The position numbers were made by a program, and so were the translations under genes. Positions 10,753-63,799 of a stretch of 64,000 nt of DNA are shown here, piece after piece. How positions within the stretch are numbered: the first letter of the stretch is position 1; the number at the start of each line of letters is the position of its first letter. The DNA is from Anthoceros angustus (lineage: Eukaryota; Plantae; Anthocerotophyta): positions 62,001-126,000 of the forward strand of contig MU008173.1 of assembly GCA_010909165.1 (NCBI GenBank), in the 5' to 3' direction. The notes under the pieces are model-generated. The model searched no databases. It saw only the letters and a list, made by a program, of their open reading frames with translations, and was not told the origin of the DNA.

Positions 10753-10779
10753 CTCCATATTTTGCTCTTCTTCTCCCAA

Positions 10780-21231: not shown

Positions 21232-21366
21232 TGTTAGAAATCTATAGGATTGGTGCAACACATCACATATTAGAGTTATGAATATAAGTCCTAGAAGTAT
21301 ATAGGATTATCCCAGGAGCGAGATAGGGTTTCATACTATCAAGAGTATGACAAGGCCAAAGGCTAT
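21232..21366 (+). mobile_element. Left part of the Ty1/copia 5' LTR (split by the giant insertion)
   Basis: Starts TGTTAGAAA, an 8/9 inverted match to the LTR end TTTCTCACA at 61623-61631. Ends at the CTAT TSD. Confidence 0.75.
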
Positions 21367-21399
21367 AACAGCATAATATTTGAAGGGGCTGAATATACA
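21367..21399 (+). repeat. Left TIR
   Basis: aacagcataatatttgaaggggctgaatataca. Confidence 0.9.
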
Positions 21400-21659
21400 A
21401 AGCCTTACCAAGAGGAAAAACTTGGGCCTTTGAATTCGCGATTCAGATGTTTTGGTTTTCTTGGTGATGGTTCATTCCTTCCCTTCCCTTCGGCATCAGC
21501 TACTTTTCTCGTCGAGTGCACACGGTTATGGTCATCTTGTGAAAGCCCCAATGGTCTTCGCGGTGATATTCGATCGGTCTTTGCCATTGGTTTAACACCT
21601 ACTTGGAAAGCAATACACAGCACTAAAAAGCAATAAAAGATTAAAGAGGATGTTTGCAA

Positions 21660-24600
21660 GATTAAAGAGCTCGTTCAACAATGGTCGTGCAGTCATTGGG
21701 CACGCCGGCGCCCCGGAAAAGGCTTCCAAGCTGGCTACGCAACAGAAAGTAAATGTCCAATAACCTAACTACCAAAATCTTCGCCAGCAGCTTGAGTCTT
21801 GGGTGGGCATTGCCCAGATACGCTATCCAACACAACATCGACGTTTCTGAGAAGGGCGTGGTCGGGGTCCTCGAAGTTGTCGTTTTTGGGCATTCTCCAC
21901 ATCCAAAAGACCAGGATGACTGCTTTCGGTGTTGTAGTCTAGATGCCACACTGCGCTCAGAGTTCTCTGCCCGTCATCAAGGATTTGCCCCGTTTTCTCT
22001 TTCATCCTGTTCAACCCCAAAGGTACGACCTGTGCTTGCAAGTGACCCTTCTCAGACAAGCTTAATTCCTTTGCCCAGAATTGGGCAGGTCCTCGTCGGT
22101 GTGGCTCATGATTCAATTCCTCCTGAGCGTCTGGAAGTACCTCATATCCATGTATCCTTTGGGGAATGAATTGCGCACATCATTTGTCCAAGTCCGCAGC
22201 GATGCAATTGCGGCCACATAGCGTAGCTAGGGTTCGTCGCTTCACGCACACGCATCTAATATCCAATCTCCTTCTTTGGAGAAGTTGTTGATCATCTTAC
22301 GCATCAACCCTAATGGCCTCGATAAGCACATACCACGAGCTTGTCCAATGACATATAAAGAAGCTTCTTGATCGGTGTTGTGCCCAATGATCACGACCAT
22401 TATTGAGCAGGCCAAGGGCGGTGTTAGGTAACATTGAAACCTTGTTCTTCTTCTTTGTTACCCCCACCCTACCGTGATGTACTCGGCGGTATCATATCCA
22501 CCTTGATCATTATGCATGTTAGTTTTGTCCCATACAAGGAGACCATCCCTCCACGATTACTGCTGCGCGCAGCCTCCCTCACGGTGTGCGGCTCCTCCAC
22601 CCATGCATAACTATCATGCGGTTCCTCACAACTCGTCATGTCATGGAAAGAGTGAAATCATGCATCGTGTTTGGTCCATCTTTACATCATGCTTTCCTTG
22701 TTGAATCCACAGGCACATCCATAACCAATAAAGTGTAATTCCTCTTAGTAAAAACCCTCGGATGTCCAACACATCTCTCGCTACCACTTGGTATTTCACG
22801 ATACACTCCGTGGTTGGAGCAGTGAGCATTGCAGGCCTTCTTCCATGTCCATGTCGCTAGGGTCCTTTGTTCGTTCTCGGACCCTTCCATGTGTGCACTT
22901 CGGTGTAAGCACGGAAGTCCTCAGTAGTTTTTCAAATCCGCACATCTTTCACTTGTTGCACCGTCACGTCGGTCGGTGCTCAAAACGATTATGACAATAG
23001 GTAGGGTGGGGAAGGCGCGGCATGCGGCCTTCACCCCATTTACAACGAAGAAATGGTGGGCGGGCCCCCTCCCACTCAATGAGTCTTAAAACAAATGACA
23101 CCTTTCCATCGAGCTGTTTGAAACCGTGCAATAACATCATCCGAAGAGTGCATTGGGTATTCTGCCTAACCATCTCGAAGAGTCACATCCTAAGTGTTTC
23201 GCCGCCACTTGGATGACATGAAGTTTCTTCCGCAGTATCACCTCCTTGGACATACCATTCAGGTCCAGTAAACTGTCAAAACCTTTTCCATCACACTAAT
23301 CAGCATTTTCTGACCCGTCTCTCCTGGTGGAATTCCTTGGAAACTGCGCCATGGTTTCCCTTGCATCTCTTTGGGCTTAACAAAAACGCTTTCCACAGTC
23401 TTCACCTCTTCTCCAACTTTGCGTTTGCCCTTGCTCTTCTTGCTAGTACCTGCTGCAACATGTTTGGCCTGTTCAGGAAGTTCCATCGCCTCCCACTTGG
23501 TGAAGATCATCACGTTTTCCCACACCTTTCCCTCCAGTTTTGCTATGCATAGTATATGTGTCCGGTTGTCCACTTTGTTTTGCTTGTATTGCTCATCTTC
23601 CCGACCTTCGTCATCCTCTATCATTGCACCTTGTATAAATTGAACTTCCAGTTCATGCTCATTGTCACACCATCCGCTTTGCAATCAAGTTCATCCACAG
23701 GTATCGACCTTTCGATAAAGTTCATCTTTTCCTCTTGTCGACATTGTGTTGTGGTCGGTTGCGAACTCGCATCTCTGTAGAGTTAGCCCGCAATAGACAT
23801 GGGCCTCCATCCATTGGAACCTTGCCTTCCACGGTGATATATCGCAAGGCTGCTTCATGGCGGCGTAAGTATGATTGCCTCAGTACCCCATAATATACTT
23901 CTTTGCGGAACTTTTTCCGGTCTAATGTTTTGATATCCACGATCGGATGGGTCAATCATACAAAGCAAAGGCAGCACACCTTCTTCAATACGACCCTTGA
24001 GATAGCGAGCCGGGTAGTTCGCCCAAGCCTCATCCACTTGACGAACAGCATCCGGGTTAAAGCGAAGCGCCCTCAAATTCTCGACTTTACAGTCTGTTTA
24101 CGGCACCACCTTCTTTGATCACACTCACGACTTTACGCAAATAATCCTCATGCATCATAGCTTCGGTCTTTCTCCATCTGTTGAGACATGCAATGTTGGA
24201 ATCTCATTGTTGTCGATTTCCCTTGGGACGCTTGAACTTTTTCACCTCGTTCCTATCGAACCATCCGCACTCCGGGACTGCTTTGCCCACCACCTTCCTC
24301 ATCATGCATGCTTTTCCGCTTCTCATGGCCCCAGCGCCTTCCTCCAGCCACAGGTTTCCCTCGGCCGGCATCTGGCGCCTCCCTCCTCCGCGTCAGGCGC
24401 GGCATCGGCGCCCTCCTCCCTCCATCACCCCGGCATGCGGCGCCCGGCGCCTCCTCCTCTTCATGCGGGCGGCATGCGGGCGGCGGCGCCCTCCTCCTCC
24501 TCTCATGCGGAGGCGGCATGCGGCGCCCCCTCTCCTCTCAACTGGGGCGGCATGCGGCGCCCCCTCTCCGCCTCTCGTATGAGGCGCGGCATCGGCGCCC

Positions 24601-26800
24601 CCTCTCCGCCTCCTCCATATCACGGGCCGGCATGCCGGCGCCGACGCCTCCCCTCTTCCATGTAGCGGGACTCCTCCCATGGTGCTTGGATGGCGGCGAC
24701 CTTGGAAGGAATCGTCGCTGCGGCTCCCTCCATCACCCCGGCATGCGGGCGCGGCGCCTCCTCCTCGTCCGTCATGTTGCCCAGTGGTCGGGCCATGGAA
24801 GACCACCCAGTGCATTTTCCCCATCATCCTCTTCAAATGCCTCCACGTCTGAATGACCAAGCAACTCAGGAATAGGCCCATCCTCCTCATCAGAAGGACC
24901 GAACTCTACCTCATCGTCTTCTTCATCCAGTGCAAAGTTTGGAAGTCCCTGTCTTGTCCTCCTCAATGACATCTCTCGGCGATGACGTATAATCGAGCTC
25001 GTAATCACCTCACACATGCTTGCACCTGTAAAATGTTCTCTCACTCTGTCCATCACAAGCAACAAGCACACTGTTAGACTGCAACACTACATCCAAGGAT
25101 GATGGAGAATGCACTGTAAGCAAGATGTATACTCACATTCTCAGCTCTGAACGCTTCTCGAAAAGTGTTGGACAACTCCTTCGGTTCACATTTCTTCCTG
25201 TGTAGACAGGCCACTTTCAACAAATACACAGTATAGTCGGGTGCAAGCATGCTTTGGTGCCACACTTTTGTGCCATATGGCAAAGTACATTTGGCTATCT
25301 TGTGCTAGAGTATGAATGGTGTGAATATGAATTTTGAACCATTTACTTTTATATATTTTATCATACTTCTTACCTTATAGTATATATATTTTATTATTAT
25401 TATTAGTATGCTCTACTTTAACTTTCTACTTTTTACTTTAACCATAAAACTTAACTTTAGGTAAGTCTAAATCACTCACTTTACCGTTGACAAGCTGTGC
25501 CCACCACCTTCCTCATCATGCATGCTTTTCCGCTTCTCATGGCCCCAGCGCCTTTCCCCAGCCAGCCCAGGTTTCGTGGCGCGGCATCGCCTCCTCCTCG
25601 CCGCGTCGGCGCCGGCATCGCGCCCTCCTCCATCACCCCGGCATGCGGGCGGCATGCGGCGCCCCCCTCCTCTACCTTGCGAGGCGGCATGCCGGCGCCT
25701 CCCTCTCTCAGGGGCGCGGCATGCAGCGCCCCCTCCTCTCAACTGGGGCGGCATGCGGCGCCTCTTCCCGCCTCTCCGTATGCGGCGCGGCATGCAGTGC
25801 CCCTCCTCCCTCTCATATCACAGGCGCCGGCATGCGGCGCCGCGCCTCCCCTCTTCCATGTCTGAGGGACTCCTCCCATGGTGCTTGGATGGCGACGTCC
25901 TTGCGAGGATTAGGCTGCGGCTCCCTCCATCACCGGCATGCGGGCGCGGCATGCGGCGCCTCCTCGTCCGTCATGCGCCTTGATCGGGCCGCCATGGAAG
26001 ACCACAGGTCCCGCATTTTCCCCATCATCCTCTTCAAATGCCTCCACGTCTGAATGACCAAGCAACTCAGGAATAGGCCCATCCTCCTCATCGGAAGGAC
26101 GAACTCTACCTCATCGTCTTCTTCATCCGATTGCAAAGTTTGGAAGTCTGTCTTGTCCTCCTCAATGACATCTCTCGTGATAGATAATGGAGCTCGTAAT
26201 CACCTCACACATGCTTGCACAGCAAATGTTCTCTCACTACATCCATCACAAGCAACACCTTTGTTAGGCGCAACACTACATCCAAGGATGATGGAGAATG
26301 CCGTAAGCAAGATGTATACTCACATTCTATTCTGACGCTTCTCGAAAGTGTTGGACAACTCCTTGGTTCATTTCTTCCTGTGTAGGCAGGCCACTTTCAA
26401 CAAATACACGATGGTCGGTGCAAGCATGCTTTGGTGCCACTTTTGTGCCATATGGCAAAATACATTTAGCTATCTTGTGCTAGAGTATGAATGGTGTGAA
26501 TATGAATTTTGAACCATTTACTTTTATATATTTTATCATACTTCTTACCTTATAGTATATATATTTTATTATTATTATTAGTATGATCTACTTTAACTTT
26601 CTACTTTTTACTTTAACCATAAAACTTAACTTTAGGTAAGTCTAAATCAGCTCACTTTACCCGTTGACAACTGTGCCCACGTTTGGACATTGATGCGTCC
26701 CACCTCTCTCCCTTCCTCCGATCCTCGCTTCTCGCTTCCTCCCCCTCCTCCTCCTCGCTTCGTGTCCGCTTGAGCTGCCTGCTGCTTCTTGCCATGGCTC
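21660..26800 (-). pseudogene. Multi-exon cargo gene(s) of unknown function, frameshifted; C-terminal part weakly resembles amino-methyltransferase motifs
   Basis: Chain of minus-strand ORFs (26652-26852, 25074-25283, 24772-25071, 23855-24076, 23722-23955, 23259-23684, 22964-23173, 21662-22116) with an AT-rich intron-like block at 25300-25480. Confidence 0.45.
24284..26680. repeat. ~1.2-kb tandem duplication with TGCCCAC microhomology
   Basis: 24284-25497 matches 25498-26673; TGCCCAC occurs at 24284, 25498 and 26674. Confidence 0.9.
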
Positions 26801-27556: not shown

Positions 27557-29749
27557 AGACATCGTCGGCAAAGGTTCGTCTTCTCGGGCTGCGTGAGGTG
27601 TTGCCACTTTACAACATGGGCGGTATCGGGACTCGACATGGGTGGACGGTTGTCGATGTTGGGGCACTGTGGTGGTGCTAACCTAGTGGTGGATGCAGGA
27701 TCTTTGGATATATTGGCTGAAGGATGGGGTGCTAGTGATTTCCTGATGTATGGGTCTTTGGTGGTATGGGTTGCTTGTAATGTTGCTTGTAATGTGGGTG
27801 CTGGTGCACGCTTCTTTTCTTTTGCTCTCCGCTAGAGGCCACTTGTGTTCATGCGGTGTGATTTCGTGCGCTTGGGGCCGTGGCTCTGATTTTGTTCCTC
27901 TTATGCCGCCCATCTTGGACAGTGCTTTCCTATTTTGAGGCTGATGCCCACCTTCTTATTCTAGTGTTCTAATCCGTCGTGGCTGTAAGGGCTTGGTGAT
28001 GCGCGCTTCTTTTTGCGCGCTGCTCTCCCGCTGAAGGCCGGCATGGTTTCCAGAACTGTGTGATTTTGTGCACTTGGCTGGGGCCGGGGCCCGTTGTTTT
28101 CGTTGCTCTTGTGCCGCCCATCTTCGACAGGGCTCACCTCTTTCCAGGCTGATGTCCTGCTGTTTATTCTAGCGTTCTAGATGTTGTTATCTGTACGTGT
28201 TGGTGGTGCGGTGGTAATCTTCGCCGGTGGATGTTGGATTTAAGCTAATTCGTCGTGATCGGTGCTAACCTAGTGGTGGATGCGGAGGTTGAATAGATTT
28301 GCTGCGCATCGGTCTTGATTTCCTGGCGATGTATGGGTCTTGGTGATATGGGTTGGCTGCGATGTTCTTTGGTAACTTTGGATCTTTGTGCTAGCTCTTC
28401 AGGCGTTCGGCGTTCTGATCGTCGGATCTGTAAGGGCTTGGTGCATCGTATGCCCATGTGGCTACCGAATTTAAGCATAGGTGGTGGGCTGAAGGGGTGC
28501 TAGTTGTCTAACGTTGCTTGGATCGATTTCCTGTTCGAGGCTCTTATCCCACTTCATCTCGCAGTGCATAAATCGGTGGGGTGTTAGTGGTTGGTGCAAG
28601 TGGTGCAACTCTGCTCATCTTTGTATGATGGTGCTAAGGTCTCGGTCAGCTGGTTGTCTGGATCTTTGTTATGGTGTACTCTGCCATCTGTTCTTCTAGA
28701 AGGTTCTTTGGGAGGTAGGCGGTGAAGGGTTCGGTCCTTAAGAGTTTTGGTATGTCAGCTCTACATATGTTGTGAAACGGATGCTATTGGTTTTTGGTTT
28801 TCAATAGATGGGATCTTGCGGATGCCTCCGGAAGCCGTTTTCATCTTGCTCCAAGTTTCCATCCTTGGTTTTTGCCACGGGCGTGGTAAGCGGTCCGTCG
28901 AGTTAGTTCTCCTTGGTGACCCGGGCATTGAAGGGTGCACAGTCACGCTTGTTGTCCAGCCCCTCTAGGTCGGTTTGGTACCCTTGTATTAGAGGACCAT
29001 TAGTCATATCGCCCCTTTTGTGTGTTCATATGCGCACTTGTGTGTTTTGTGTTCAATGTTTCTTCATGAGTCTCACTTGTGGCGGTTGCCCCATCGTCCA
29101 TGTGTGAAAATATATCCACAGTGGCGGAGTTGTGCTACTTGCACACCTCCCTGTTTTGCTGGTCACTAGGCCATTGACCAATTACAGCGGTGTCGAGGCG
29201 GCTTATTAGCTATTTTGGGCTTTTATGCAAAACAACCCAATTTTTCCTGTAAAAGCAGGCCGGCGAGATACAACAAAATCATGGCCTTACATGCAGGATC
29301 CACGAATCGCCAACTCTGGATCCGATGGAGCGATGGAAGTCAAGAAACTACATTTTATTGTCATGATAAACTTGTACCCTATTTACCTTTGTCAAAATTT
29401 GGAATCCATTTACCGCATCGGGGTGGTGTATGATTGTGACATGTACTCCAGACAGGCGACTTGGACATGTTTGTGGGATATTTAGCACAAATTTCTCGTA
29501 CTTCCCTCTTGTCCTTCCATCATGTTCCAACTCATGTGTGTCGTCCAAGTGCATACGTGCGTTTGAATGGTTGCATTTGGCTTCATCGGTATACATGAAT
29601 GAGAGGCGGCGGTATCCGGCCCACACCTCATGTAAACCGGTCAAGAAAAGGATGTACATGAAGCTAAGGGTCGTCTTCAATAGCCACATGATCGTCGTCT
29701 TCAATAGCCACTGATCGTCGTTGTTCGCCCTTCCATGGTCTTGGTTCGC

Positions 29750-32700
29750 CTCCATTGGCACATCTTCTTGCGGAGGCGGGCGTCATAAGATTCGCTGATG
29801 ATTGAACGTGTTTGGGCCTTCAGCTGTTTAGTTCGAGTTAGTTCAAACCCATAGGCCAAAACAAATGTATCAGCAATGATCAGCATCTGCACATTCTTCT
29901 TTGACCTTCTAGTGCCTTGCCTGCAACGCCTTGTACCGTGCCCTAAAAGCACTTGATACGGCAATATCATCTCTTCCATGTACCTTCCTTCAAAAGCGTC
30001 GTATTACATGTCACCCACGGTGAACTTTCATGAAAGGTGATTCGCTTTTCGAAATCTATGTGAAGGACCTTTGCAATCCGAAAGGACGATTGGTGCATCA
30101 TTTTCGCAAGGGCTGCTATCATATTTCCGCCGCAATCTCCGAAATATCACCATTTAACCTCTCTTGCTCTCTTGAGGAATGTTCGATAGGTTCCTACATA
30201 CATGTCTCGTCTAGGCACTTCATGACAATGGATGAGGAAGGACTTCAACATCCGGAGCGAAGCAGGATCTTTGCGGGATCTCTGCTTCTTCTCGATTATA
30301 CCATCGCCAAGGATTCTTCAATTCTGTCGGACCACAGAATTTATCTTTTCCACAATGCCCTCTTGTTCTTCCAAAGCGATTTCCACCACATCTTGCCGTC
30401 GCCCAAAATGTCTTTTAATTTCTCCTCCAATTTGGCCGGATAGCGATAATGACCTTTCGGATCTCTTCCTTCAGCATGTGCTTTTTTTCCTTACTTCCAA
30501 AGACATCGAGGCGGCAAAATTGGTCATTCGGCACATGCTTCAAGAACTCGAGGCCTTCATTGGTGGACCAGTAATTATCAGTTGAATATTGTTTACCTCG
30601 CATCACCGTAATGAAACCGCGTTCCTCCCTCTCCTCTCGAGTTATTTTGAACTGATGCTGAAAAGAAATGTTGTGCAACTGATGCACAGTGGCTACCCGT
30701 TGGTAGCCAGCCCTGCCATTAGGGATGGGCCAAACATACCTTCTAAAATCAGGGACTTCAGGCACCAATACAATCTGTGGGTTTGGCGTATAAGCACTTT
30801 CCAACACATAGGTGAGTTTGGGCAAGGAAAAGCCTCCTTATGCCTTAGCACAGTCGAAAATCTGGAGAACATTTGGTCTACTGATCATGGGTGTGCCCAA
30901 CAAGGAGGAAGCCTACCTTGATCTTCTCAAAGACTCGCAATGACACCAACATGTTAAGGTAGGCGAATAGCGGGCGTTTTATTTTCACGTCGTGTTACGT
31001 GTCACCCACGGTGAACTTTCATGAAAGGTGATTCGCTTTTCGAAATCTATGTGAAGGACCTTTGCAATCCAGACGATTGGTGCATCATTTTCGCAAGGCG
31101 CTATCATATTTCCGCCGCAATCTCCGAAATATCACCATTTAACCTCTCTTGCTCTCTTAGCGAAATCGTTCCGATAGGTTCCTACATACATGTCTCGTCT
31201 AGGCACTTCTCACAATGGATGAGGAAGGACTTCAACATCCGGAACAGCAGGATCTTTGCGGGATCTACTTCTTCTCGATTATACCATCGCCAAGGATTCT
31301 TCAATTCTGTCACGGACCGAATTTATATTTTCCACAATGCCCTCTTGTTCTTCCAAAGCGATTTCCACCACATCTTATCGCCTAAAATGTCTTTTAATTT
31401 CTCCTCCAATTTGGCCGGATAACGATGACCTTTCGGCATCTCTTCCTTCAGCATGTGCTTTTTGCTACTTCCAAAGACATCGGAGGGGCAGCAAAATTGG
31501 TCATTCGGCACATGCTTCAAGAACTCGAGGCCTTCATTGGTGGACCAGTAATTGTTGAATATTGTTTACCTCGCATCAAGTAATGAAAGCGTTCCTCCCT
31601 CTCCTCTCGAGTTATTTTGAACTGATCTTTGAAAAGAAATGTTGTGCAAGCGATGCACTGGCTACCGTTGGTAGCCACTACCATTAGGGATGGGCCAAAC
31701 ATACCTTCTAAAATCGGGGACTTGAGCACCAATACAATGTGGGTTTGGCGTATAAGCACTTTCCAACACAGGTGAGTTTGGGCAAGGTAAAAGCCTCCTT
31801 ATGCCTTAGCACGAAAATCTGAGAACATTTGGTCTACGATCATGGGTGTGCCAACAAGGAGGAAGCCTACCTTGATCTTCTCAAAGACTATGACACCAAC
31901 ATGTTAAGGTAGGCGAATAGCGAGGCGTTTTATTTTCACGTGCCGTGTTGTCCAGGTTGCAAATATAACACCTTGAGTAAACCCTTGTAGTTCAATATAA
32001 CATGTTGTATGGCGATTATCGGGGTTTGCGTTCACGATATTTCAAACTCGATGAACAATTTTCTTGACATAGTATAGTTGTATACAAGGCGACCAACAAC
32101 ATGGACGTCAAGAAGCGGAGTGTCGCCATATTCTTTGGCGGATGCATGAAATGTGGGGCTGTGTCTTACATTGGTCCATTAGTCTATAGAGTCCGAGATA
32201 CCGTGCGGGGTTTGCATAACACTTGACCCGATGCTTCATGCACTTTTCCCTCTCTGCTTTTAAACGCTCTCTGTGGTTTCGCAAATCGGCTTCATATTCT
32301 TACACGCTCAATGAACCAAGGAACAACGCAACTGTTTAGTATGGCAACAATCTGAGAACATGGCATCGTAGTAGCAAGTGCAAATGAGAATGGCCAAGTC
32401 TTGTTGGTATCTGCGCAGCCTGACCGAGTGCGCGGTATCTGGCGCACCATGACCTTTCCCGGATGCGGTATCATTTTCGTTTTCAAACAACATCGTACCT
32501 TGTTTCAGCGTTCTTTCTCGCTCCGATCTTCCGTTTAAGGTAGTCGCATGTAACTGGCTGCAAAGCGATTATTTTGGGATCCTTACTTTGAAGTGATTAC
32601 GCCTGGCAAAAGTAGGAGTGTGAAATATTGTCTTGGCCAGCCATTGCATTTGTTGCTTGTATTCTTGAAATATTTCTCCTTTGGTATAAGAGTCCAGGAA

Positions 32701-32900
32701 GGTGATCGCTTCAACATTTGGCATCAGCTCTGCGATTAACATGAACAAGCTGGTTCATCCCGTCAACTGCGGTGGAAGCATGTATGCGTCGGTTGCCTCT
32801 CGTCTGGGAGGAGGCGGACCATGGTATATTATCTGCGGCTCTCTCCTTGGGCCGCCGATTTGAACCTATACAAAACACCCTTGTCAGGTTTCGCGGCCTC
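29750..32900 (-). pseudogene. Sola-like (DUF7869-type) DDD transposase #1, frameshifted and partly duplicated
   Basis: Minus-strand motifs read across indels: IAELMPNVE..YTKGEIFQEY, MDQCKT..PHF..VHVVG, LYLQxDNTARENKN..FAYLNMLV, KVGFLLVGHTHD..DQMFS, ISFQHQFKITR. Confidence 0.75.
29997..31950. repeat. ~1-kb tandem duplication within transposase #1
   Basis: 30011-30990 matches 31002-31940; the second copy is indel-rich. Confidence 0.9.
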
Positions 32901-33429
32901 CCTCTCTGGCGCTTGGGTGACTCAGGCCTGAATTCCAGTACGCCCTCTTCGCTAATTGGCGCTAGGGCTTGTGTAGTCGCCTCCGCATATGTGCAACTCG
33001 ATCCATCCAGCAGACCACTACACACGATGCTGTAAGCGAACACTCGCCTGTGTTGTCGAGCCCCAGTGAGGAAGACTCCTCCAGTGGCAGCGTGGCGTCG
33101 TGCTCTCTTCCACTTCTGGTCTTAGCGTCTAAACTTCTTGAGGCCCGGCAGTTCGGTGAGTGATTCAGGAGGAGCACTCTCAGGAATAGCGACACCCTCT
33201 GGCCTTGTTGGCACTTCCGGCCTTTGGCAAAATCGATTGTCAAAATTCGCTCCGCACGAACTTTCCTCTTCTGCAATTTACTCCTGTCATTCCTGCTCTC
33301 GTCCTCTTGTACCCATTTCAACACGCGTTGTGCTGGAGTGTTACGCTCCAACTCCTGTTCAGGTACACAACGTACTTCTCCTTCATTACTCTCGGTAGAT
33401 AGAGCCATGGCTGCATGCAAACTTGTTGA

Positions 33430-33575
33430 ATCACAGTGTTCACACAGCCAATTCCCTTCTGGAATATCCTTTAATGCAGGTGTGAGACAGAAAATATGAT
33501 AGCCTCTGTTGCACTGTCACGAGCATAAGCTCTTCATCCGTGGTGTGCCGCATGCCTCACAGGCAAATCCTGGTG
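33430..33575 (-). other. PHD finger at the C-terminal side of the gypsy integrase
   Basis: FACEACG..DEELMLxxDxCNRGYHIFCLTPALKDIPEGNWLCEHC, a C4HC3 pattern read across small indels. Confidence 0.85.
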
Positions 33576-36389
33576 GTACCCGTTTGAGGAACAATTCTTG
33601 CATCAAGATTTGGCAAGTGACATGGAGCTAAATGTTTCATGTGCTCCTTGCATCTTACGCCATCCGTCCTTGAGTTCCACTACTCCTTGCTCACCCACAT
33701 TTACCACCACGAGAATCAACAACCCGGTCTTGACATCTAATGTGCTTGGCAGTCATGTTGTAGGTACACATAATCTCACAGTGCGAATTTCACGGCCTTG
33801 GGCTTCCATGAGCCCCAGCGTGTGAGCATATCTCAAGCGGTCTCTGTCTTTGTGCAATCGCAAGATTGTCCATAGCCATGGGCGAGAATCCTTGAACATT
33901 TCGCTCTAGCTTGCACTTCGTAAGCACACCTCCATATTCCTACTCCAGTCTACAGGAGTAGAATATTTGTCTTGCACCACATTGGGCAAAGCGCATTCCT
34001 TCAGAACAATGCAGATGAAGCTTCCCAATCTTTGCTGCACACTCACTCTATAACCCAACACAATATAGGAAGTAATTCATCCCGGCACTTGGGTTCCACG
34101 GTGATCACGATTACTTCACGAGGCGTCCTTGAATGTGAACCAACCTTTACGCGGACCATCGGCTTGAGGATGATCCTGGGCGTTCTCCTGATCAATCGGA
34201 CTTACGTCCGACCAGCGGAATTCTCCTCTGAATTCATTGCCTTGATCGGTGAGCACCTCCGCAACTTCCGTCTGCTTAGTACACCGCGCTCTGCTGGTGT
34301 AATATGAGGTTCTTGAGGCGAAATGCTACCTCCACCCACTTGAGAAGTGCTCAATCATCACCATACGATGTGATTTCCTTGCTTTGTCAATGGTAGTTCC
34401 GGCATCAAGTCCACCGACCACGAAAAACAAACCCGGATTGGTAAAGAGTGTAACACAACATCTTGTGTGTTAAACCAGCCTTCATTGCATCACACAGCTG
34501 ACTAGCCACCACTCTTTCCACATCGCATACATGCGGACCGAAATATGTGGTCTTGACATGTGGTGTGTCCTTTTACACCAAAGTGACCTAGTGTTTCATG
34601 CACTTTAATCACAATCCTGTTCTTTCTTGAGGACTTGGCACCTTCTTTACAACCTCTCCTTCTGTGACAACTCTCCATCCGCCATGAGTATCGGCCACTC
34701 GTCCGTAGTGCAGCGGCGGTGCTCTTGACATTAGTGCGATACCTTCTTTGGCGGTACAGCGCTTGTGAATGCCTCGGATGTCACGGCGGTCAAGATCGGC
34801 TCTCCTCCTGTTCACCTTGATCGCCATGAGTGCCATGAAAACTGGGCACATTTTCCATGTGTCCTAGGTCTTGTCGTGCTCGTGGCATCGTCGGCATTTG
34901 ATGGATTCCTACTCAAACCATCGCATTGTGGTGCACCTTGCACCGCTATGCACGATTTCCATGTCATATTCAGCGCAATGCCCACGGCGTTCGCTCAACT
35001 TCATGTTCGTCATGAGCCAATGAAGTGGTTGATGATCCGTCACCAACTGAAACGCCTTCCAAGCAGATAAATTACGAAATGCAACACGCCTGCGGCAAGA
35101 CACTCTCCTTCATATGAGGAGTAGTTTACCTCTGCATTGTTGGATCTGCTTGCATAAGCCACAACTCGCTCCATTCCTTCGTCGATGTGGATCGCTCCTA
35201 TCCTGCAATACTCCAATCCGTATCTGGAACAAGCGGCTTCTCAAAGTCGGTCTAAGATGGGCTTCTCGACCAATTGATCCCTTAGATCTTGCCGCTAGCT
35301 CATTCTTGATCCCATTTCCAAGTTACCTCCTTCTTGACATCTCATACAAGGGTTTGCATGTGGGCGGGTCTTTCATAAACCTCCTGTAGTTCACCAACCC
35401 AAATGCTCTAAGGCTGCCACATCCTTGGGCCTAGGCATCGCATCACTGCACCTTAGCCAAGCTGCGGCATGATTCCTCCGGCACAATTTCATGTCCAAGA
35501 TACTCAATCCGCTTGAATGCAAATTTGCACTTTTGGATGAGCTTTCAAGCGATTTGGACAATCTTTGCAGAGTCTCCGGATGATCCATATGTTCCTCGAT
35601 GGTGTCATGAAAACTAGGATGTCGTCGATGTAACAACGCACAAGCGGCGGATCCTGCGGCTCAAGTCGCAATTCTCGGAAATATATGGAAGCATTTTTCA
35701 GCCGAAGGGCATAGTCTCCCATTCCCAAAGCTGATCCTTTCCCGAGCCGTTTTGCTCTTGTCTTGCTCCTCAATCACAATCGATTGAAACGGCGGAAATC
35801 CAAAGTGGTAAAGTACTTTGCCTTACCAATTGCATCAAAAATCTCATCTGGAGTAGGCATGGGATACCGCTCCATCAACGTTACTTCGTTGAGAGGTCGA
35901 TAGTCCCACACATTCGCCTATCTTTCCACTCGCCATTTTCGTCCTTCTTGATTGGGAAGCGATTGCGTGACATACTCGAGCTTGATTTCGAATCAATCAC
36001 CTTCAAACAGCTCGACAACGCTTGTCCACAATTTCCACTCTGGACTCAACCTATGCCTTCTTGAAGATAGGCTCGAGCTAGTGGTAACAATCTTGAACTT
36101 GATCTTTTCGTACCTTCCTAGCTCATTCCAGCTGAACGCAAAAGCACCTCTGTTTTTCTCGAGCATGTCGATGATCTTTTGTTTGTCCTCTGGACTGACG
36201 TCTTCATCAATCTTCCAGACGTGAACCTCCTTGGTGACACTCTTGGTTACAAACTCTGTTTCCACAGCAGCCATGCCAAACATGTCTTGGGTTCCTTCCC
36301 TTTCATCCGCCTCTGCCGGCTTTCCATCTTCTGCTAGCTGCAAGTGATGGCTCTTTTCCTTCACCTCCTGCCAACTGAAATGCCAATCC

Positions 36390-37300: not shown

Positions 37301-37518
37301 TCTCCATCGCACTACGAATCATTGATTCGCCTTCCCTCCGTCTTGGCGGGCTTCATGTTTGGTATGGATCTCTCGGACATGTGTGGTGAGATTCCACAGG
37401 CGATTCTCCTTTCGTGATTTTCTCGAACCCTTGCCTCCTCAAGGTGCTCGAGCCGCGATCTTGACACTCCCTTTCCTCTGCGGGTTTGATTCTTCGAGAG
37501 GACAATTCCTCTGTCTCC

Positions 37519-48829: not shown

Positions 48830-49150
48830 ACCCGTCAGGTCCGGACGGGGATGCGACTTGACGGAGCTGTTCCAGCTAGGGCTAAACGGAACCGTTAGGA
48901 TCGTACGGAGCCGTCAGGGATGAACGGAACCGTTAGGATCGGACGGAGCTGTTCCCGCTAGGGCTGAATGGAACCGTTAGGATCGGACGGAGCCGTCAGG
49001 GCTAAACGGAACGGTTAGGATCGGACGGAGCCGTTGGGACAGGACAGGCTCCTTAGGACCGAACTTGACGGAGCTGTTACTGGGCTGAACGGAACCGTTA
49101 GGATCGGAGCCGTTGGGACGGAAAGGCTCCTTAGGATCGAATGGGACGGG
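48830..49150. repeat. Array of ~38-40-bp degenerate repeats downstream of TnpD
   Basis: ggaaccgttaggatcggacggagc(c/t)gt recurs about 6 times. Confidence 0.85.
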
Positions 49151-51799: not shown

Positions 51800-52670
51800 C
51801 CACCACAACTACGCAGATAAACCGAAGAATGAAAGATCAACCGAGACATATCAAGGAAGTGAGTGATATGCAGTAGCGTCTTTGGAGCCGTTCTCAACCG
51901 TTTTGTGTCCTTTGTGTTTGATGAGGCGCGAAGCAAGCTCCGAGCGCACAATCAGTCCTTGACATACCACAAACAATGTCATTCCGTGTCTTCCTACCTG
52001 CACCACACCATGACCACAGTTCACCACGTTCATGCCCTTGCCGAGAGTTTAGTGCGCGATATAGTTGCCTCCTACTGACTCCTATCTGCCGAGACAGAGA
52101 GGAAACCAGATGGCTTCCATGGATGTCCTCTGTCAGAATGATGTTGAATAGTGTGTTCCTGGCCCTCAGGTGGTCTCCAAATTGCACATCCTTTAGACGT
52201 GTACATGCATCCTTCACATTCTTCAATATCAAGGCTGCAAGGTGGCTATCCTTTGTAGTCTGTGCAATATCTGAACGGTACTCCTTTAGCAATGGCAAGT
52301 GGCCAAAAAGTGCCAAGATGTCCTTCCTGCATGATGATGTGTACGCAGAGGTGAGGGACAAAAAATGTTGCCCAAGTTGGCGAGCTACTCGTTGTTTCGC
52401 ACGGAGAGAGCACTCTCGACTCCCCCTGGAGGCAGCCATAGCCCGATGCTCAGCTCTCCACTTTGGACGCTGCCTGCTGATCACCTTTTGCCCGGCCACC
52501 ACCCTCATGTCTCCTCCCCTCGCGAGCATCTAGCCCTTGTTGTTCATCTTCCTCCTCGATAACCCGCACCAACCGGATGTTTGCGATGCGCTTGTTTGGG
52601 CCTCGCTTCCTCGACGACGCTGTTTCAAATTTATGCTCGCACCGCTTGCCGTGAACGGGCCATGCCACAA
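51800..52670 (-). pseudogene. N-terminal fragment of another transposase-like protein (HTH-like)
   Basis: ORF 51894-52529 has SLSRQIGVSRRQLYRA..GRKTRND and continues as SSNTKDTKRLRTAPK..HFLDMS. No catalytic region follows. Confidence 0.4.
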
Positions 52671-54510
52671 TACCATCATCGGCATGCTATACGACACCGC
52701 CTCATGACTCAGCACTTTACCAAAAAGGCTTGAGTTAAGAGCGACACAAGCACCCATTAACAAGGCCCCACACGATACACGAATGGCACAGTAGCAGATT
52801 ACCTCCACCGCCAGCATCTGCATCTTGCAGATTACCACCAGACACATCACCCAGCACCGCAAGCTTGAACCGAGCATTACAGTGCCAGCATCAGCAGAAG
52901 CGTAACAGCGCCAACATCCTGTAGCGAACCTAGCATACCGCATCAACCACCAGATCAGATACAGCTCATCATCCACAGGTGCACTAGCATCAACATCCAT
53001 CCGGCCACGCCGAAACCTGGCAGTCTCCTCCACTCCAGTGAGCGGATCTGGCTGAATGCTGGTTTGGTTGCAACATAGTGTGACCGCTGCGGAGAGCAAC
53101 CACGCCAGGTTCTTGGTGTCATCACCCACAAGTTCCTACTCCTTCTCCACATCGGACAAATGACAAGTGCACAAGTTTGCTCATGTCACCGACCTTTGCT
53201 GGAGCGTGAGTCCCCAACCACTGATTTCCTCGGCCTTGGCGGTTTTCAGAGGTTGACTTGTTAATGCCAGAGTTGAGTGGTGGTACGCAACCCGATCCAC
53301 TAGGTAAATAATCCAATTCAAATTCCCGCCATAAATCGACGGGCCATGGCCGGTTCATCACAATTGTGGCTAAACGAACTTTGTGTCTGTGGACAAACCC
53401 GTCCAAGTGAACTCAACATTTGTTTATGTGAAATAGATATTCTAATAATCTATATATTTATATATTAACGCCAAATACAAAACTCTGCTATAAGTCAGAA
53501 AAATTAGATACATCCGGACGAAATGAATTACATATATTTATATGAACATAGAGAGGACAAATTAAGAGTGTTTCGTCCGTTCCTCACTTAAGTGAGCACC
53601 AAAGCATGCTTGTTCCCAGTCATCTGTCAATGCCGGCAATGCGTCCACTTCATAAGGCCTTGAAGTGCACAAAATCCGCAGTTCTGGGTCTCGCTGCCCT
53701 CCATCCAACGTTGCCCACAGGACCCATCCTGCCCTTGCCCTTTGGTTTGTAAGTGCACCGTTGAACCCAAAAACCCAAAGCTTCAGCATAGGCGTCATAG
53801 CACAGTTTCTTCATCCGGCTCCTCTGTTTGTGTCAATAGCCATTCCTGCTGCAGAAGCATAGTGTCCTCAAGCTGGTTCATGTGCCTCCGCAGCTGCACA
53901 GTCTCCTCATACGAGTATGGGGAGGGAATTGGATCTGGATTTCCCACCCTCAATGCTTTGGGCAAGCCAGACTTCTCTCCACCGCCTACCGCGGCCTTTG
54001 TGGTGCTTGCCTTTTGAGTGACCCGGACTTTGTGCCCCTTCCGTTCCACCTCCACCTTGCTCAAGTGGTTGGAAAGCATGTCCCGGCGGAGATCGTATCG
54101 GCGTGGAGGATCTGCAGTCGATTTTGCCTCCTTCTTGCTTTTAGATTTCTTACGCCTCCGCGGCTTCTCAAACAAGTCTCCGTGTTAGGCCACACATCGG
54201 AGGTCCTTCTTCTTCGTCACTCGCCATCGTCTGCAGCACGCAACATGGGCATCAAACATGCTCAATCTGGATTAGGCAAGCACCAATTCTATTTCGGACA
54301 AGGAATTTCTCACTGTCGTCCTCGGAAAGGATGGAGAGGCTTTGGCGGGGTCTCTCACAAATTTTGGGAAAACCACGTGCCTCGCTTGAATCGCAGACGC
54401 TCCAGCGTTGGAAGAGCTTCGTTCGCCTTGATTTGGCTGGTTGAAGAAGGACTTCAATTGTTCGGGTTTTAAGGCGACAACAAACCCTAATTTCGCGATC
54501 CGTAACAAGC
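52530..54510 (-). other. Cargo ORF fragments of unknown function, possibly one multi-exon gene
   Basis: Co-oriented ORFs 53795-54175, 53562-53798, 53122-53406 and 52530-53129, with an AT-rich gap at 53420-53560. Confidence 0.3.
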
Positions 54511-55339: not shown

Positions 55340-58300
55340 TTAGTGGCTCGATCCCGGGATGCGTGTTGCGGTCCGAGGTGGAGAAGAACTCACACGTCCC
55401 GTATATGCTATGTTCCCCGACTTCGAGAACGAACCTCTACTCGCCATAGATAGAAGCCCGTCTGGAAGGAGGAAAGTTGGTGTCGGTGGTGGAGTCGAGC
55501 CTTGTAGAGGATTGTTCACTACTATTTCCAGCGAAGATGCGGGACGCCTAATGCAGATGAGGACAATGTCTTCAGACACCCCAACCATTGAGAAGTTTGG
55601 ACCGGGCGATCTGCGTCACTTTCCATCCAAGCCTTTGGCGATACCTTTCGACCTAGCGATGTGGGCTTCCGTATGCAAACGCCGGGCTAGTGTCTTTGAG
55701 GAAAAGTGAAGGCGATTATGGGAGAGGATTTCAAAGCCTTGTTGCAACAAATTGTGCATCCGCAAGTTCACAAAGAAGCTTTTCATGAACAGCAGTGCAG
55801 TTTGAGAATGGGCACGAGCAAGAGACATTTTTGCAATCATGCGGCGATTTGCAGACAAGGGGTTTTCACCTCATGGGTCGATTCCTATGCAATGTTGTTT
55901 GAAAGCCAAGCGATATCTCTTGCATAGGGTCCGCAAGGACGAGGAGTTGAAGCGGAGGTTATTAACGCACCATGGGGCGCTAATAAGGCCAGCCCTCGTA
56001 CAATCCTCCCATGCTTTGGCTGCAATTGCACGGATGGATGCGACTTTCCTTCACTTGGCGGCGACTCGAATGTGGAGGTATACAATCTACGACACTTTCA
56101 CGAAGCATGAGGTTTGGATACAATACTGAGTGGAATGGAGTCAAAAGGTGAACGCTTTGTGTCGTATGCATATTTCTTGCGGCGTGGGGTCAATTTCAAG
56201 CGGGTGAAGATACCCAAGTCAAATGATTCTCGACTTGTTCCATATCTGTGGTGAAGTTCAACATACTGACACCGATCTTGGAGTTGACCAAGGTAGGCCT
56301 CCTCCCTATTGTGGTGCTGTATGCATGGCATAAAAGCATGTGGAGTAATGGAGGAGTTAGCGTGGATGGGGAGCGGTCGGCGGCGGTGGCTCGATCCCGG
56401 GATGCGTGTTGCGGTCCAGGTGGAGAAGAACTCACTCCAGTCTCGTATGCCCAGCTATGTTCCCCGACTTCGGGGAACGAACCTCTACTCGCCATAGATA
56501 GAAGCCCGTCTGGAAGGAGGAAAGTTGGTGTGCGGTGGAGGCGAGTGCGGCGATTGTTCACTACTATTTCCAGCCGAAGATGCGGGACGCCAATGCGAGA
56601 TGAGGACAATGTCTTCAGACACCCCCACCATTGAGAAGTTTGGACGGGCGATCTGCACTTTCCATCCAAGCCTTTGGCGTACCTTGACCTAGCGATGTGG
56701 GCCTTCCGAGCGGCTAGTGTGTCTTTGAGGAAAAGTGAAGGCGATTCCGTGGGAGAGGATTTAAAGCCTTGTTGCAACAAATTGTGCATCCGCAAGTTCA
56801 CAAAGAAGCTTTTCAGCGTGCGGGTTTACGAGAATGGGCGGACGAGCAAGAGACATTTACGCAATCGCATGCGGCGATTTCGAGGCCACAACAAGGCAGT
56901 TTTCACTCACCTCATGGGTCGATTCCTATGCAATGTTGTTTGAAAGCCTTACGTGTATCTTGCATAGGGTCATAAGACGAGGAGTTGAAGCGGAGGGTTA
57001 TTACAGATGCACCATGGGGCGCTAATAAGGCCAGCCCTCGTGTACAATCCTCCCATGCTTTGGCTGCAATTGCACGGATGGACTTTCCTTCACTTGGCGG
57101 CGCCGAATGTGGAGGTATACAATCTACGACACTTTCACGAAGCATGAGGTTTGGATACAATACAGAGTGGAATGGAGTCAAAAGGTGAACGCTTTGTGTC
57201 GTATGCATATTTCTTGCGGCGTGGGGTCAATTTCAAGCGGGTGAAGATACCCAAGTCAAATGATTCTCGACTTGTTCCATATCTGTGGTGAAGTTCAACA
57301 TACTGACACCGATCTTGGAGTTGACCAAGGTAGGCCTCCTCCCTATTGTGGTGCTGTATGCATGGCATAAAAGCATGTGGAGTAATGGAGGAGTTAGCGT
57401 GGATGGGGAGCGGTCGGCGGCGGTGGCTCGATCCCGGGATGCGTGTTGCAGTCCAGGTGGAGAAGAACTCACACTGCCGTATGCCCAGCTATGTTCCCCG
57501 ACTTGAACCCGAACCTCTACTCGCCATAGATAGAAGCCCGTCTGAAGGAGGAAAGTTGGTGTGCGGTGGATGGGCGCGAGGGATTGTTCACTACTATTTC
57601 CAAAGATCAAGATGCGGGACGCCCAATGCAGATGAGGACAATGTCTTCAGACACCCCAACCATTGAGAAGTTTGGACCGGCCGATCCGCCACTTTCCATC
57701 CAAGCCTTTGGCGATACCTTAATTAGCATGTGGGCTTCCGTGTGCGCAGAGCGGCTAGTGTGTCTTTGAGGAAAAGTGAAGGCGATTCCGTGGGAGAGGA
57801 TTTCAAAGCCTTGTTGCAACAAATTGTGCATCCGCAAGTTCACAAAGAAGCTTTTCATGAGCAACGTGTGTTTCGAGAATGGGCACCCGAGCAAGAGACA
57901 TTTGCATCACAGCGGCCCGATTTCGGTGCCACAACAAGGATGTTTTCACTCACCTCATGGGTCGATTCCTATGCAATGTTGTTTGAAAGCCTTCCGACGG
58001 TATATCGTATAGGGTCCGCAAGGTACGAGGAGTTGAAGCGGAGGTTATTCAACGCACCATGGGGCGCTAATAAGGCCAGCCCTCGTGTACAATCCTCCCA
58101 TGCTTTGGCTGCAATTGCCTGGATGGATGCCACTTTCCTTCACTTGGCCGAGCGACTACCGAATGTGGAGGTATACAATCTACCAGACACTTTCACAAAG
58201 CATGAGGTTTGGATACAATACAGGAGTGGAATGGAGTCGAAAGGTGAACGCTTTGTGTCGTATGCATATTTCTTGCAACTGTGGGGTCAGAATTTCAAGC

Positions 58301-60700
58301 GGGTGAAGATACGTACCCAAGTCAAATAGATTCTCAACTTGTTCCATATGCGCGGGGCTGAAGTTCAACATACGGAGCACCGATGCCGGAATTGACCAAG
58401 GTAGGCCTCCTCCCCAGCTATTGCGGTCTGTCTGTATGCATGGCATAAAAGCATGTGGAGTAATGGAGGAGTTAGCGGATGTAGCCATCGGGTAATGGCG
58501 CGTGAGTCGCCGGGGCGCCCGACACGTTGCTATGCAGGTGATCGAGCCCTCCACCGCAGAAAAAGGAGCCGGCATGGCGGCACCATATTGTCTCGGTGAA
58601 GGGGCACGCATGGCGGCGCCCTCAAATGTCCGCCCTCCCGTTTTGTGCCGTGGAGGGCTCGGATGGCCTTCAATGGCGAATGAGGCGCGGCGCCGGCGCC
58701 TCTTGTGAGGCGGCCATGGCGGCGCCATGCACTCCACCCGAGGGCGCCCGGCATGCGCCCCAAATGTGGAGTGCATAGCATGGCGGCGCCCCCAAGGCCC
58801 TAAAGCGCGGTGAACTACGGGTGCTTTGTTGTGTCTGAGGAAGCTTGCGCCTCTTTGCACCGGTGCTGCATGCCGCGCCTCCAAGCTACTTATAAGGTTC
58901 ACTCCAGGTGATGGAAGGGGCATGTTCGTGGTCGGGGAATGCATGGGTTGGGTTCTTGGTAACTTCTGCGGGGCTGTCGGATTGTATGCAAACTGTCACT
59001 ATGCATTTGGCGTGGAATAATAGGCAGTATGCGTATGTCCTAGTTTCGATCTCGGTTTCAATGCACGACACTCGTCTTCCCAAATAGCTGCTGTATTCAA
59101 TAGTTATTGAATTTGGTGCCCACAAGTCGACAATGGTGTTCCATGACATACGACTATGTATCAAGAGGCACTCAACAAGCATCGGATACGATTGATGGAG
59201 GAACGGAAGAAGTTAAGCATCGGTCGAAATCGTACAAGGAGCGAAATATATGTTGTTATCTATCGGCGGCATGGACGAGAAAAAACTTCTGCCGCATATT
59301 TTGCGGTGGCCAAAGGACTTGAAGGAGGATAGTCGGATCACGGTGCATGTTGTTGGATGCATGATACATAATTACACGTTCGAGGCGGGCGTATCGCATT
59401 ATGCCAATCTCGTGAATGATGCAAATTTAACAATAACTATTATCCGGGCGTTATACACACGTATGAAGGATACTTCCCAAAGTCTTATACGCATTTGGAC
59501 AATACATGCCGAGAGAACAAGAACCAGCTTCTATTTGCGTGCTTGAACATGCTCGTTGAACTCGGGACGTTCGAGAAGGTGAAGGTTGGATTCCTCCTCG
59601 TGGGGCATACGCGACCAAGTGGATCAAATGTTTTCATGTTTTCTAAGCATTTAAAACATAAGGAGGCCGGACATTGCCAACTATGGAGGACATATTGAAG
59701 TCCTCGTTCACCGAATCCAGGTGAAAGTGTTGTGAGGTGGCGACTTCCGGACATACGTATGGCCATTACAATTAGTGAGCGCGGCCGGAAGTATACTGCG
59801 GTTGAAGTTGAACAACCTTTCATTTCAGCACCAGTTCAAAATCACCCGCGAGGACAAAGTTGGACGGGGAAAGGTTACCGTTATTCGCTGTAAGCAATAC
59901 TCCACTTCCCCTTGTGGGAATCAAGATGGGCTCGACTTTTGTTCCGGACACCGTCATCGGGCCCGCTCCTTTGATGGCATTTTGGCGAAGGACAAGAAAG
60001 CTAGTGATGGTGGTTTGACCGCGTGAAGGCGTGGATCACTTGAAAAAGGACTGGTGAAGCACATATTTGACTGTGGAGGAAGAATGGTGGATGGATTTGG
60101 AATGATCAACACGAAATCGCAAATATTGTGGATCATAACATTGGGCTTGTTACGCAAAACCCACGGAGATGGTATGCGATAGGGCTGCCCGTCCCCCTTT
60201 GCACATACGGAAGAAAATTTGTCTTGGACGAGGCTCTTTTGCGTGACATACCACAGGACATGTATCTAGGGGCCTACCAAACTATTGAACGCCAAGAAGA
60301 GGTGGCAAGAAGGATGGATGGCGATATTATGGAGATACTGAGAAAGGAATGTTTATTGTGACACATGCGAGGGTGACACACAATAGGCGTTGGTAGCGAA
60401 GGTTGTAAGTGTGCACCTTGGGGCCCAGAACCGTATTGCTTGTTGGTGGTGGCTGAGCACACGGATGCTTATGAGGGCAAGTATGTTGGAGAATTTTTCA
60501 AAGGTAACGACAATGGACCACCGCCAAAAGGTCGTGGAAAGTGCAAAGGGCCCCAACATCCAAAAGGTTTTGTCGAAAACCATTATTATATACTACGGGT
60601 TTCACTCACTTCAGGAAACATCATGCGCGGATAAAGCTATAAAGGAAAAGTTGAGTGCGCTCGTCCTCACATTCAACCAAACACTTGGATGAGGCAATGG
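55340..60700 (+). pseudogene. Sola-like (DUF7869-type) DDD transposase #2; candidate mobilising enzyme of the giant element
   Basis: LAERLPNVEVYNLPDTFTKHEVW..F..VKIPKS; GMDEKK.LPH..VHVVGCMIH; DNTCRENKNQLLFACLNMLV..KVGFLLVGHT; LSFQHQFKITR. Collinear with transposase #1 and ends ~0.9 kb from the right TIR. Confidence 0.8.
55343..58480. repeat. Three tandem ~1.04-kb copies of the 5' part of transposase #2
   Basis: gtggctcgatcccgggatgcgtgttgc starts at ~55343, ~56386 and ~57423. Confidence 0.9.
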
Positions 60701-61533
60701 AGAGTGATGAAGATGGAGATGAGGCACTGTGGACGGGGCGTCTCGATTCGTGAAGAGTAATGACATGTGCTAAGCAACGAAATAACAAGGGAACCTTATG
60801 TTTATCCCTAATTTCTCTTCATGGCATAGGGTTTGAAAGTCGGACACGAGTTATCGGCATAAGTTTCATGTTCTTGTCATACATTGTTTTTAAGACATGC
60901 AGACCACCATGCCGATGAGTACATCTTAAATGTCACCTTGTAGCGTCTACCATGTTTTGGCATGCAATACGCGCAATACATGATTACACAATTGCACTAG
61001 TCATAAACATTTGCCGTTATAGGCGATGAATGGTGATGGCGGACATGGGTGCTTGTGCTCCACTTTCCACCCTCTAGGCGCCATATGCTCCCATATCGTG
61101 TTCGTTTCCGCCATTATAACAGACAACAGCGTTCATGCGCGCCGTAGAGCCACGGCAAAGGCGCATGCCTGCCATGCCACACCCAATCGCCGCATACATT
61201 TTGGTGATATGACAACCTCTACAAAACCCATACCATAGTTGTCTCCATGTGTCTCCATGTGATTTTAAATGCAATGATTTCTGTTCTTGGCCACAATGAT
61301 TGCAACACAAGCCACAAAACTCGAGCGACTTTTTCCCCTGAGGGGAGAGAACATGGGTACTTTTCGTGAAGCGCATGATAAGCGGAGAGCACCGTTTTCC
61401 GAGCGTGGTTAGCTGGCACAATTCGTGATGTTCACCCTTATTTTACATCGTTTTGCACCTACTCCCAAACATGCCGTTTTGATAAACCATCTTAAACCCG
61501 GATCCACGTATATAGACCCCTGCAGCCGCTTCA

Positions 61534-61566
61534 TGTATATTCAGCCGCTTCAAATATTATGCTGTT
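61534..61566 (-). repeat. Right TIR
   Basis: tgtatattcagccgcttcaaatattatgctgtt is the reverse complement of the left TIR with one mismatch; followed by CTAT. Confidence 0.9.
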
Positions 61567-61570
61567 CTAT

Positions 61571-63795: not shown

Positions 63796-63799
63796 TACC

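Follow-up and report, generated by a model that had tools for sequence, protein, structure and literature searches.

A 40.2-kb Sola-type transposon insertion in a hornwort genome: an oversized dead element with probable nested-insertion debris between its own two arms

By their published definition, Sola transposons encode a DDD transposase and make target-site duplications (TSDs) of 4 bp; they are mostly 2-9 kb long, some exceeding 15 kb, their terminal inverted repeats (TIRs) have been reported at 11-1124 bp, and they are present in bryophytes, the moss Physcomitrella being the cited case (PMC10741241). In Ectocarpus, giant Sola-1, KDZ and EnSpm elements have been described, most of these giant families carrying nested insertions along, and one of them, the 21.5-kb Sola1-1_Ec32, has an opposite-strand gene with ParB-like and N4C/N6A methyltransferase domains (PMC12477816). 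Here we analyse a window of 64,000 nucleotides from the hornwort Anthoceros angustus (the whole stretch, positions 62,001 to 126,000 of contig MU008173.1), in which a first-pass annotation had proposed a giant Sola-like transposon carrying the genes of other transposable elements (TEs) as cargo. The 40.2-kb unit bounded by TIRs stands; the cargo does not, because the interior is dead debris and the native part of the element amounts to about 8-9 kb. Nor is it the case that no comparable family is known, since the Ectocarpus giants include a 21.5-kb Sola-1 element with a ParB-methyltransferase gene (PMC12477816). What the window holds is an oversized dead Sola-type element, not a new class of cargo carrier.

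The junctions of the segment confirm that it is a real transposon insertion, with one TIR pair and one 4-bp TSD within one long terminal repeat (LTR). The left TIR (33 bp, 21367-21399, + strand) starts 5'-AACAGC, in its longer form AACAGCATAATATT, and agrees with the right TIR (33 bp, 61534-61566, - strand) at 32/33 positions (97%), the one difference being a G/C mismatch. At a tolerance of three mismatches, applied to the repeat as a whole and to each of its halves, the window contains no match besides these two, and 0/100 shuffles gave two. CTAT stands on the outer side of both TIRs (21363-21366 and 61567-61570), and beyond it lie the two parts of an interrupted 5' LTR of the copia type. The 5' part (21232-21366, + strand) starts TGTTAGAAA and its last four bases are the left TSD; the 3' part (61571-61631, + strand) follows the right TSD and ends TTTCTCACA. 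Excising 21367-61570 fuses 21232-21366 with 61571-61631 into an LTR of 196 bp with TG...CA ends and termini complementary at 8/9 positions, which reads ...GGCTATATATG... at the reconstructed empty-site junction and runs continuously across a single CTAT (...AAGGCTATATATGTATG...). Directly 3' of this LTR is a primer binding site (PBS), TGATATCAGAGC (61632-61643, + strand), matching the canonical copia initiator-methionine PBS at 11/12 positions. The internal region of the host retrotransposon follows at 61783-64000 (+ strand), frameshifted and continuing past the window end, beyond which its 3' LTR lies, with gag, gag_pre-integrase (E 1.7e-12) and rve (E 4e-17) domains; the integrase lies upstream of the expected position of the reverse transcriptase (RT), which is the copia arrangement, and in LTR, PBS and domain order the host is a Ty1/copia element. 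Both the TIR pair with its CTAT flanks and the 196-bp LTR rebuilt by removal, with its Met-type PBS and copia gag, had been proposed from the sequence beforehand, and both were found again. A further copy of the copia LTR or of the TIR was found neither in the window nor in the searched collections, which lack the source genome, and metagenomes scanned with the TIR and with the reconstructed empty site yielded 0 matches. Because no second LTR copy was found, the reconstruction of the empty site draws solely on the hallmarks of the LTR itself.

Two transposase genes lie within the TIRs, and both are pseudogenes recognised by the Pfam family DUF7869. Broken genes such as these were searched piecewise, or with X at stop codons in our own scripts, rather than as exon-joined or read-through proteins. 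The first, T1 (58084-60700, + strand; core piece E 3.8e-15), is the element's own transposase; the second, T2 (29749-32745, - strand; E 3.9e-9), has no recognisable termini and belongs to a separate subfamily, the two being only about 64-73% identical at the DNA level. An alignment of 14 DUF7869 proteins shows an invariant triad, D271, D352 and D394, with the motifs IDGMDQ, LDNxxRENKN and GHTHxxxDQ. In T1, G replaces the first D, LDNTCRENKN has survived and GHTH..D has become scrambled, two catalytic residues being gone, whereas T2 has lost one, the first D. An AlphaFold (AF2) model seats the triad on a b1-b2-b3-a1-b4-a-b5-a RNase H-like core (b, strand; a, helix), and most of its best Foldseek matches, which are weak, come from RNase H-like nucleases, transposases and integrases; no solved structure matching the DUF7869 transposase by sequence was found. 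The two DNxxRENKN/GHT(H)-type transposases reported by the first-pass annotation are thus both present, and their assignment to the DDD, 4-bp-TSD (Sola-like) kind is borne out by the invariant triad, the modelled fold and the TSD. Together with TIRs of a length within the reported range and an occurrence in bryophytes, these characters, shared with relatives in Riccia, make the element fit Sola by the DDD/TSD/TIR definition rather than by a match to the Sola1, Sola2 or Sola3 references, the Pfam name being DUF7869 only.

The relatives come from the liverwort Riccia sorocarpa. A 92-residue core of T1, searched against 1.8 billion representative proteins, gave 476 matches, the best of them 55-59% identical; the full-length named ones are 'DUF7869 domain-containing' proteins of this liverwort, with one 90% cluster of n=16. 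Homologue searches with the T1 core and with the F-box gene of the window brought no close relative, and an exact-protein look-up of one window open reading frame (ORF) gave no record. The nearest ENA contig, L007, was rejected: it belongs to another organism, with a GC content of 39%, and does not contain the ends of the element. The annotation of a DUF7869 protein of Tubulanus polymorphus (P0046, 920 aa; L008:10001-17483) includes a protein kinase domain at the N-terminus, which may be a gene-model fusion or may mark a domesticated or fused transposase.

We used five Riccia loci to establish the normal anatomy of the family: L004, L005 and L006, three copies from one cluster, and L003 and L009, which represent two further subfamilies and whose transposases are 37-64% identical to that of L004. 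The three cluster copies have a common right end, ...GGTTCTCACTCCAGATTGTCTGTTGTT, after which their flanks are unrelated, and L004 also has the inverted left end; the TIR is 27 nt or longer and starts (G/A)ACAAC, the element termini being 5'-AACAAC. L004 is embedded in satellite DNA whose repeat unit measures about 575 bp, and its insertion is flanked by gtag on both sides (TSD GTAG), whereas three uninterrupted satellite units read ...ctcc gtag tctaaaac..., with one gtag each, and act as paralogous empty sites. It follows from this comparison that the family makes 4-bp duplications, and the Riccia TIR and 4-bp TSD are confirmed independently of the window. The native length in Riccia is about 9.4 kb, reaching 11-16 kb with nested insertions, and several copies keep long ORFs. 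In all three subfamilies the layout is left TIR, methyltransferase (- strand), a second accessory ORF (- strand), transposase (+ strand), right TIR, with the accessory genes adjoining the left TIR on the minus strand (L003:4915-8109, L004:4605-8173 and L009:3-2389). The methyltransferase ORFs match the Pfam family N6_N4_Mtase weakly (E 0.0026). The second minus-strand ORF has 562 codons in L004, and we call its product ORF562-like; the L003 annotation joins both parts as one gene of 689 residues. The ORF562-like domain has no Pfam match and no match by sequence in the PDB, and its AF2 model is poor (pLDDT, the predicted local distance difference test score, 43). Its GGNH..AA motif, which resembles the ParB box, is the one hint that it may be ParB-like.

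Nested insertions are copy-specific in two of the three Riccia cluster copies, with 2 kb in L004 and 6.3 kb in L006. Both (L004:13431-15397 and L006:3505-9822) end in the same ...CCGGTCCACGACACGACA terminus and represent an unclassified Riccia TE family, and the larger one bears 2.7-kb direct repeats that are 99.9% identical. In L004, a duplication of 1381 bp with 100% identity (L004:2413-5172) runs across the left junction, comprising 623 bp of satellite flank and 758 bp of element, so that the left TIR is present twice in identical form; either a recent segmental duplication or an assembly artefact could account for it.

Against this anatomy, the two ends of the window element read as the arms of an ordinary member of the family. 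On the left, the Riccia methyltransferase pieces match 22535-22464 and 22307-22117 (- strand) at E 1e-4 to 3e-5, in collinear order and with the strand conserved, within a decayed N6_N4-type DNA methyltransferase remnant (22117-22920, - strand; tblastx and tblastn to the L004 ORFs) in which one stretch, ..LDACA../GRNCIA, resembles motif I and another, DVP, motif IV. Next to it is a decayed ORF562-like remnant, the second conserved accessory domain (23277-24046, - strand), which the corresponding L003 segment matches at 24046-23277 with E 0.002 over 213 aa (tblastn) and whose alignment columns retain the invariant GNH..AA, Y.GLT and ATD.N motifs. The offsets of these remnants from the left TIR are within about 200 bp of those in L004, and on the right the end of the transposase is about 880 bp from the TIR in the window and in Riccia alike. 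The transposase core is 55-58% identical to the Riccia proteins over 73 conserved residues, and the termini of both share 5'-AACA(G/A)C. With all three gene remnants at nearly Riccia distances from the ends, and in the same order and strands, the native element would have measured about 8-9 kb, its arms collinear with the relatives of about 9 kb; the left arm would run from 21367 to about 24.1-24.9 kb, and the right arm from about 57-58 kb (55.3 kb with the tandem units included) to 61566. The window copy, at 40.2 kb and decayed, differs from the 9.4-kb Riccia elements by an excess of some 31 kb that separates the two divergent genes at their 5' ends, where the corresponding gap in L004 is about 2.5 kb.

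The central block that makes up this excess contains pieces of several TEs, as the first-pass annotation had noted, although what it had taken for cargo genes of three TE superfamilies turn out to be frameshifted, terminus-less fragments in one block between the element's own two genes. The largest is a degraded Ty3/gypsy-type gene set without LTRs (32965-42111, - strand), in which about 14 frames in all encode a zinc-knuckle gag, an aspartic protease (E 1.8e-5), a C5 DNA methylase (a DNA methyltransferase, DNMT; E 4.7e-6), a YIDD RT, RT_RNaseH (E 1e-5), integrase-like frames and a PHD finger (E 2.6e-6), the methylase lying between protease and RT and the PHD finger after the integrase; the gypsy-DNMT-PHD gag-pol that had been read there is therefore real, if broken. 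Retrotransposon-borne DNMTs are known from dinoflagellates and Klebsormidium. No LTR pair or direct repeat was found around the gypsy region at 32.9-42.1 kb, down to a word size of 7. Its PHD finger is separated from the N-terminal domain of T2 by only about 220 bp (junction 32745-32965), so two truncated elements must abut there. Further on, a 5'-truncated CACTA fragment (46248-49110, + strand) has the TnpD exons (46248-48393; Transposase_21 E 6e-31, DUF4218 E 3e-25) expected from the earlier reading, followed by an array at 48860-49110 of five ACGGAACCGTTAGGATCG and six GACGGAGCCGT motifs in a single orientation, which are probably the 3' subterminal binding sites of the truncated element; this array has no 5' counterpart, and no CACTA/TAGTG TIR pair was found. 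The several orphan ORFs listed earlier are present too, among them a nearly open frame of about 500 codons, interrupted by a single stop and a single frameshift (51897-53412, - strand); the orphan frames have no Pfam match, the best of them has no homologue, and the remaining DNA of the block likewise has no Pfam match. Inner termini of the Sola type were sought as TIR halves with up to three mismatches and as AACA/TGTT-anchored pairs with or without a 4-bp TSD, and none were found, while local alignment of the TIR to the interior of the element scored at background only. No intact gene was found in the interior, where every recognisable gene is TE-derived and broken. We infer that the central block is nested-insertion debris, not functional cargo.

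Four local tandem duplications, with units of 1-2.3 kb and Kimura two-parameter distances (K2P) of 0.05-0.14, further enlarge the segment. Duplication A consists of two GC-rich units of about 1.2 kb (24280-26680; K2P 0.14), B lies inside T2 (29997-30987 and 30988-31949), C lies inside the gypsy region (37519-39843 and 39844-42111), the duplicates within gypsy and T2 having a K2P of 0.05, and D is a triplication of units of about 1.04 kb (55343-58477; K2P 0.07-0.10), the last of which contains the conserved N-terminal region of T1. The copies differ by many indels of 1-5 bp, with 0.2-0.6 gap openings per substitution (about 0.3-0.6 in blocks B-D), and they are mosaic, tracts of 300-400 bp at 100% identity standing beside tracts that are 10-20% different, a pattern that suggests gene conversion or assembly and polishing artefacts. 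When the extra repeat units are subtracted, about 34 kb are left, as had been estimated.

How did an element of 8-9 kb come to measure 40 kb? The reading we favour, to which we give an even chance, is that this is one dead Sola-type copy whose central block accumulated mostly in place by nested insertion. A Sola-type element with 33-bp TIRs would have jumped into the 5' LTR of a Ty1/copia retrotransposon, duplicating CTAT; the intergenic region of its two divergent genes would then have received a related Sola-like element, a Ty3/gypsy element with DNMT and PHD domains, a CACTA element and further DNA of unassigned origin; and subsequent deletions would have stripped the nested elements of all their termini before local tandem duplications arose. 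In support, the foreign TE pieces form one contiguous block between the arms, their own termini gone, and the nested insertions of the Riccia relatives are copy-specific. Accumulation in place is a common fate of resident TEs, and 40 kb is far above the reported sizes of Sola elements. Several observations pull the other way. Decay is less visible in the outer TIRs (32/33) and the TSD (4/4) than in the interior: had gypsy and T2 arrived after the insertion, about 2-3 changes would be predicted in TIRs and TSDs, which total 74 bp, and 1 is seen. For an origin of the block before the last jump this disparity is a weak argument (a probability of about 0.2-0.4), and the comparison of tandem divergence with TIR mismatches is too weak a dating to decide, the divergence of the duplicates being indel-rich and mosaic. 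The giant DNA transposons of Ectocarpus, moreover, keep moving with nested insertions aboard (PMC12477816). The accessory-gene remnants resemble Riccia only weakly piece by piece and are convincing through their collinearity: profile searches against six-frame fragments gave no single significant match, the top ones being ordered correctly in 22.1-23.9 kb (- strand). Finally, the element is known from a single copy, which gives no means of dating the block against the last transposition.

The same facts can be turned into a different history, in which the block was gained at earlier loci and a unit of 30-40 kb moved into the LTR in one step, the transposase of another copy acting in trans on the TIRs; in trans it would have to be, since with T1 dead any recent movement of the element could have come about in no other way. 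This amounts to a non-autonomous giant Sola family, that is, to the first-pass reading minus the functional cargo, and we hold it to be possible, at somewhat less than an even chance. Near-perfect TIRs and TSD around terminus-less interior TEs, with tandem duplicates 5-14% diverged, are what it would predict, and Ectocarpus has, besides its 21.5-kb Sola-1 family, giant DNA transposons in general whose nested TEs are fixed among copies and whose transposase genes are often pseudogenised (PMC12477816). Yet one copy only is seen, the largest Sola length that we found in the literature is about half of 40 kb, and the Riccia relatives are about 9 kb long with large insertions that are copy-specific; the dating that would favour it is weak, for it relies on short targets, the TIR is rich in AT and free of CpG, and the divergence of the duplicates is indel-rich and mosaic. 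That the 40.2-kb unit is a still-mobilisable, non-autonomous giant Sola-type copy, which jumped with its roughly 31 kb of debris and orphan sequence, we consider doubtful; if true, no larger Sola element would be on record, and the land-plant lineage would have its first giant TIR transposon of such a kind. The presence of two DUF7869 genes in opposite orientation within one TIR pair also brings to mind a composite (macro-)transposon, with T2 at the left and T1 at the right, inverted, around a TE-rich stretch, and with the outer ends used jointly. This is very improbable: T1 and T2 are only about 64-73% identical against 97% for the TIRs, the accessory genes of the left arm are oriented as belongs with T1 and not with T2, about 8 kb separate the end of T2 from the left TIR, whereas T1 and the right TIR are about 0.9 kb apart, and neither inner TIRs nor two complete flanking elements were found. 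An assembly error, with the tandem blocks as false duplications or the whole segment as a mis-join in a repeat-rich region, is improbable as well. The four tandem duplications of 1-2.3 kb, their indel-rich copies and their identical tracts beside tracts 10-20% diverged would suit it; the junctions, unlike those of a mis-join, fit each other in TSD, TIR and LTR halves, a nearby F-box ORF of 422 codons is intact, the TE genes are broken by in-frame stops as well as by frameshifts, and the roughly 34 kb that remain do not depend on the extra repeat units. Such an error cannot create matching junctions, and may at most explain the tandem blocks, the frameshift counts being subject to the same caveat.

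The locus can further be compared with other known systems. Sola1-1_Ec32, the closest element described so far, with which we compared it by description only, is likewise far longer than 10 kb and likewise has an opposite-strand N4C/N6A-type methyltransferase gene, and the Ectocarpus giants share with the window element nested unrelated TEs and pseudogenised transposases; the sizes differ (21.5 kb against 40.2 kb), and the nested insertions of Ectocarpus are common to several copies whereas here there is one copy. The Starships of fungi are alike only in the idea of a very large mobile unit carrying other sequence: their enzyme is a tyrosine recombinase, their load includes many intact host-type genes and their mobility has been shown, while the enzyme of the element in the window is a DDD transposase, and no tyrosine recombinase or intact cargo gene was found in that element. 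Ordinary plant nested TE clusters show the same insertion of TE into TE and the same truncating deletions, with all interior pieces as pseudogenes; compared with these, the outer ends and the TSD of the window element are unusually well kept for the decay of its interior.

Outside the element, at 1270-15340, is a tandem array of Hsp70-like (actin-like ATPase) genes on both strands, spaced at about 2.7 kb, in which some pairs of copies are 96-100% identical and others are frameshifted. An intact F-box gene of 422 codons follows at 16791-18056 (+ strand); its best match among 5.8 billion proteins is only 45% identical, from which we conclude that the source lineage is poorly sampled. Close to the interrupted retrotransposon, about 60 bp upstream of the start of its LTR, there is a perfect inverted repeat of 23 nt with a loop of 8 nt (21122-21175), and short reverse-oriented fragments at 20699-20815, 12315-12419 and 8439-8594, dispersed through the host-gene array, are 73-88% identical to its internal region at 63814-63999.

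The more interesting lead is, in our opinion, the conserved N4C/N6A-type methyltransferase borne by these transposons. Liverworts are the one plant group with a reported function for N4-methylcytosine (bioRxiv 10.1101/2021.02.12.428880); the liverwort enzyme MpDN4MT1 has the motif TSPPY where the transposon methyltransferase has DVPY. With the window element and its Riccia relatives, the range of Sola-type elements that carry an accessory methyltransferase gene, known from brown, red and green algae, widens to bryophyte-grade plants, and the locus offers a concrete test case for the size limit of a mobile DDD cut-and-paste element.

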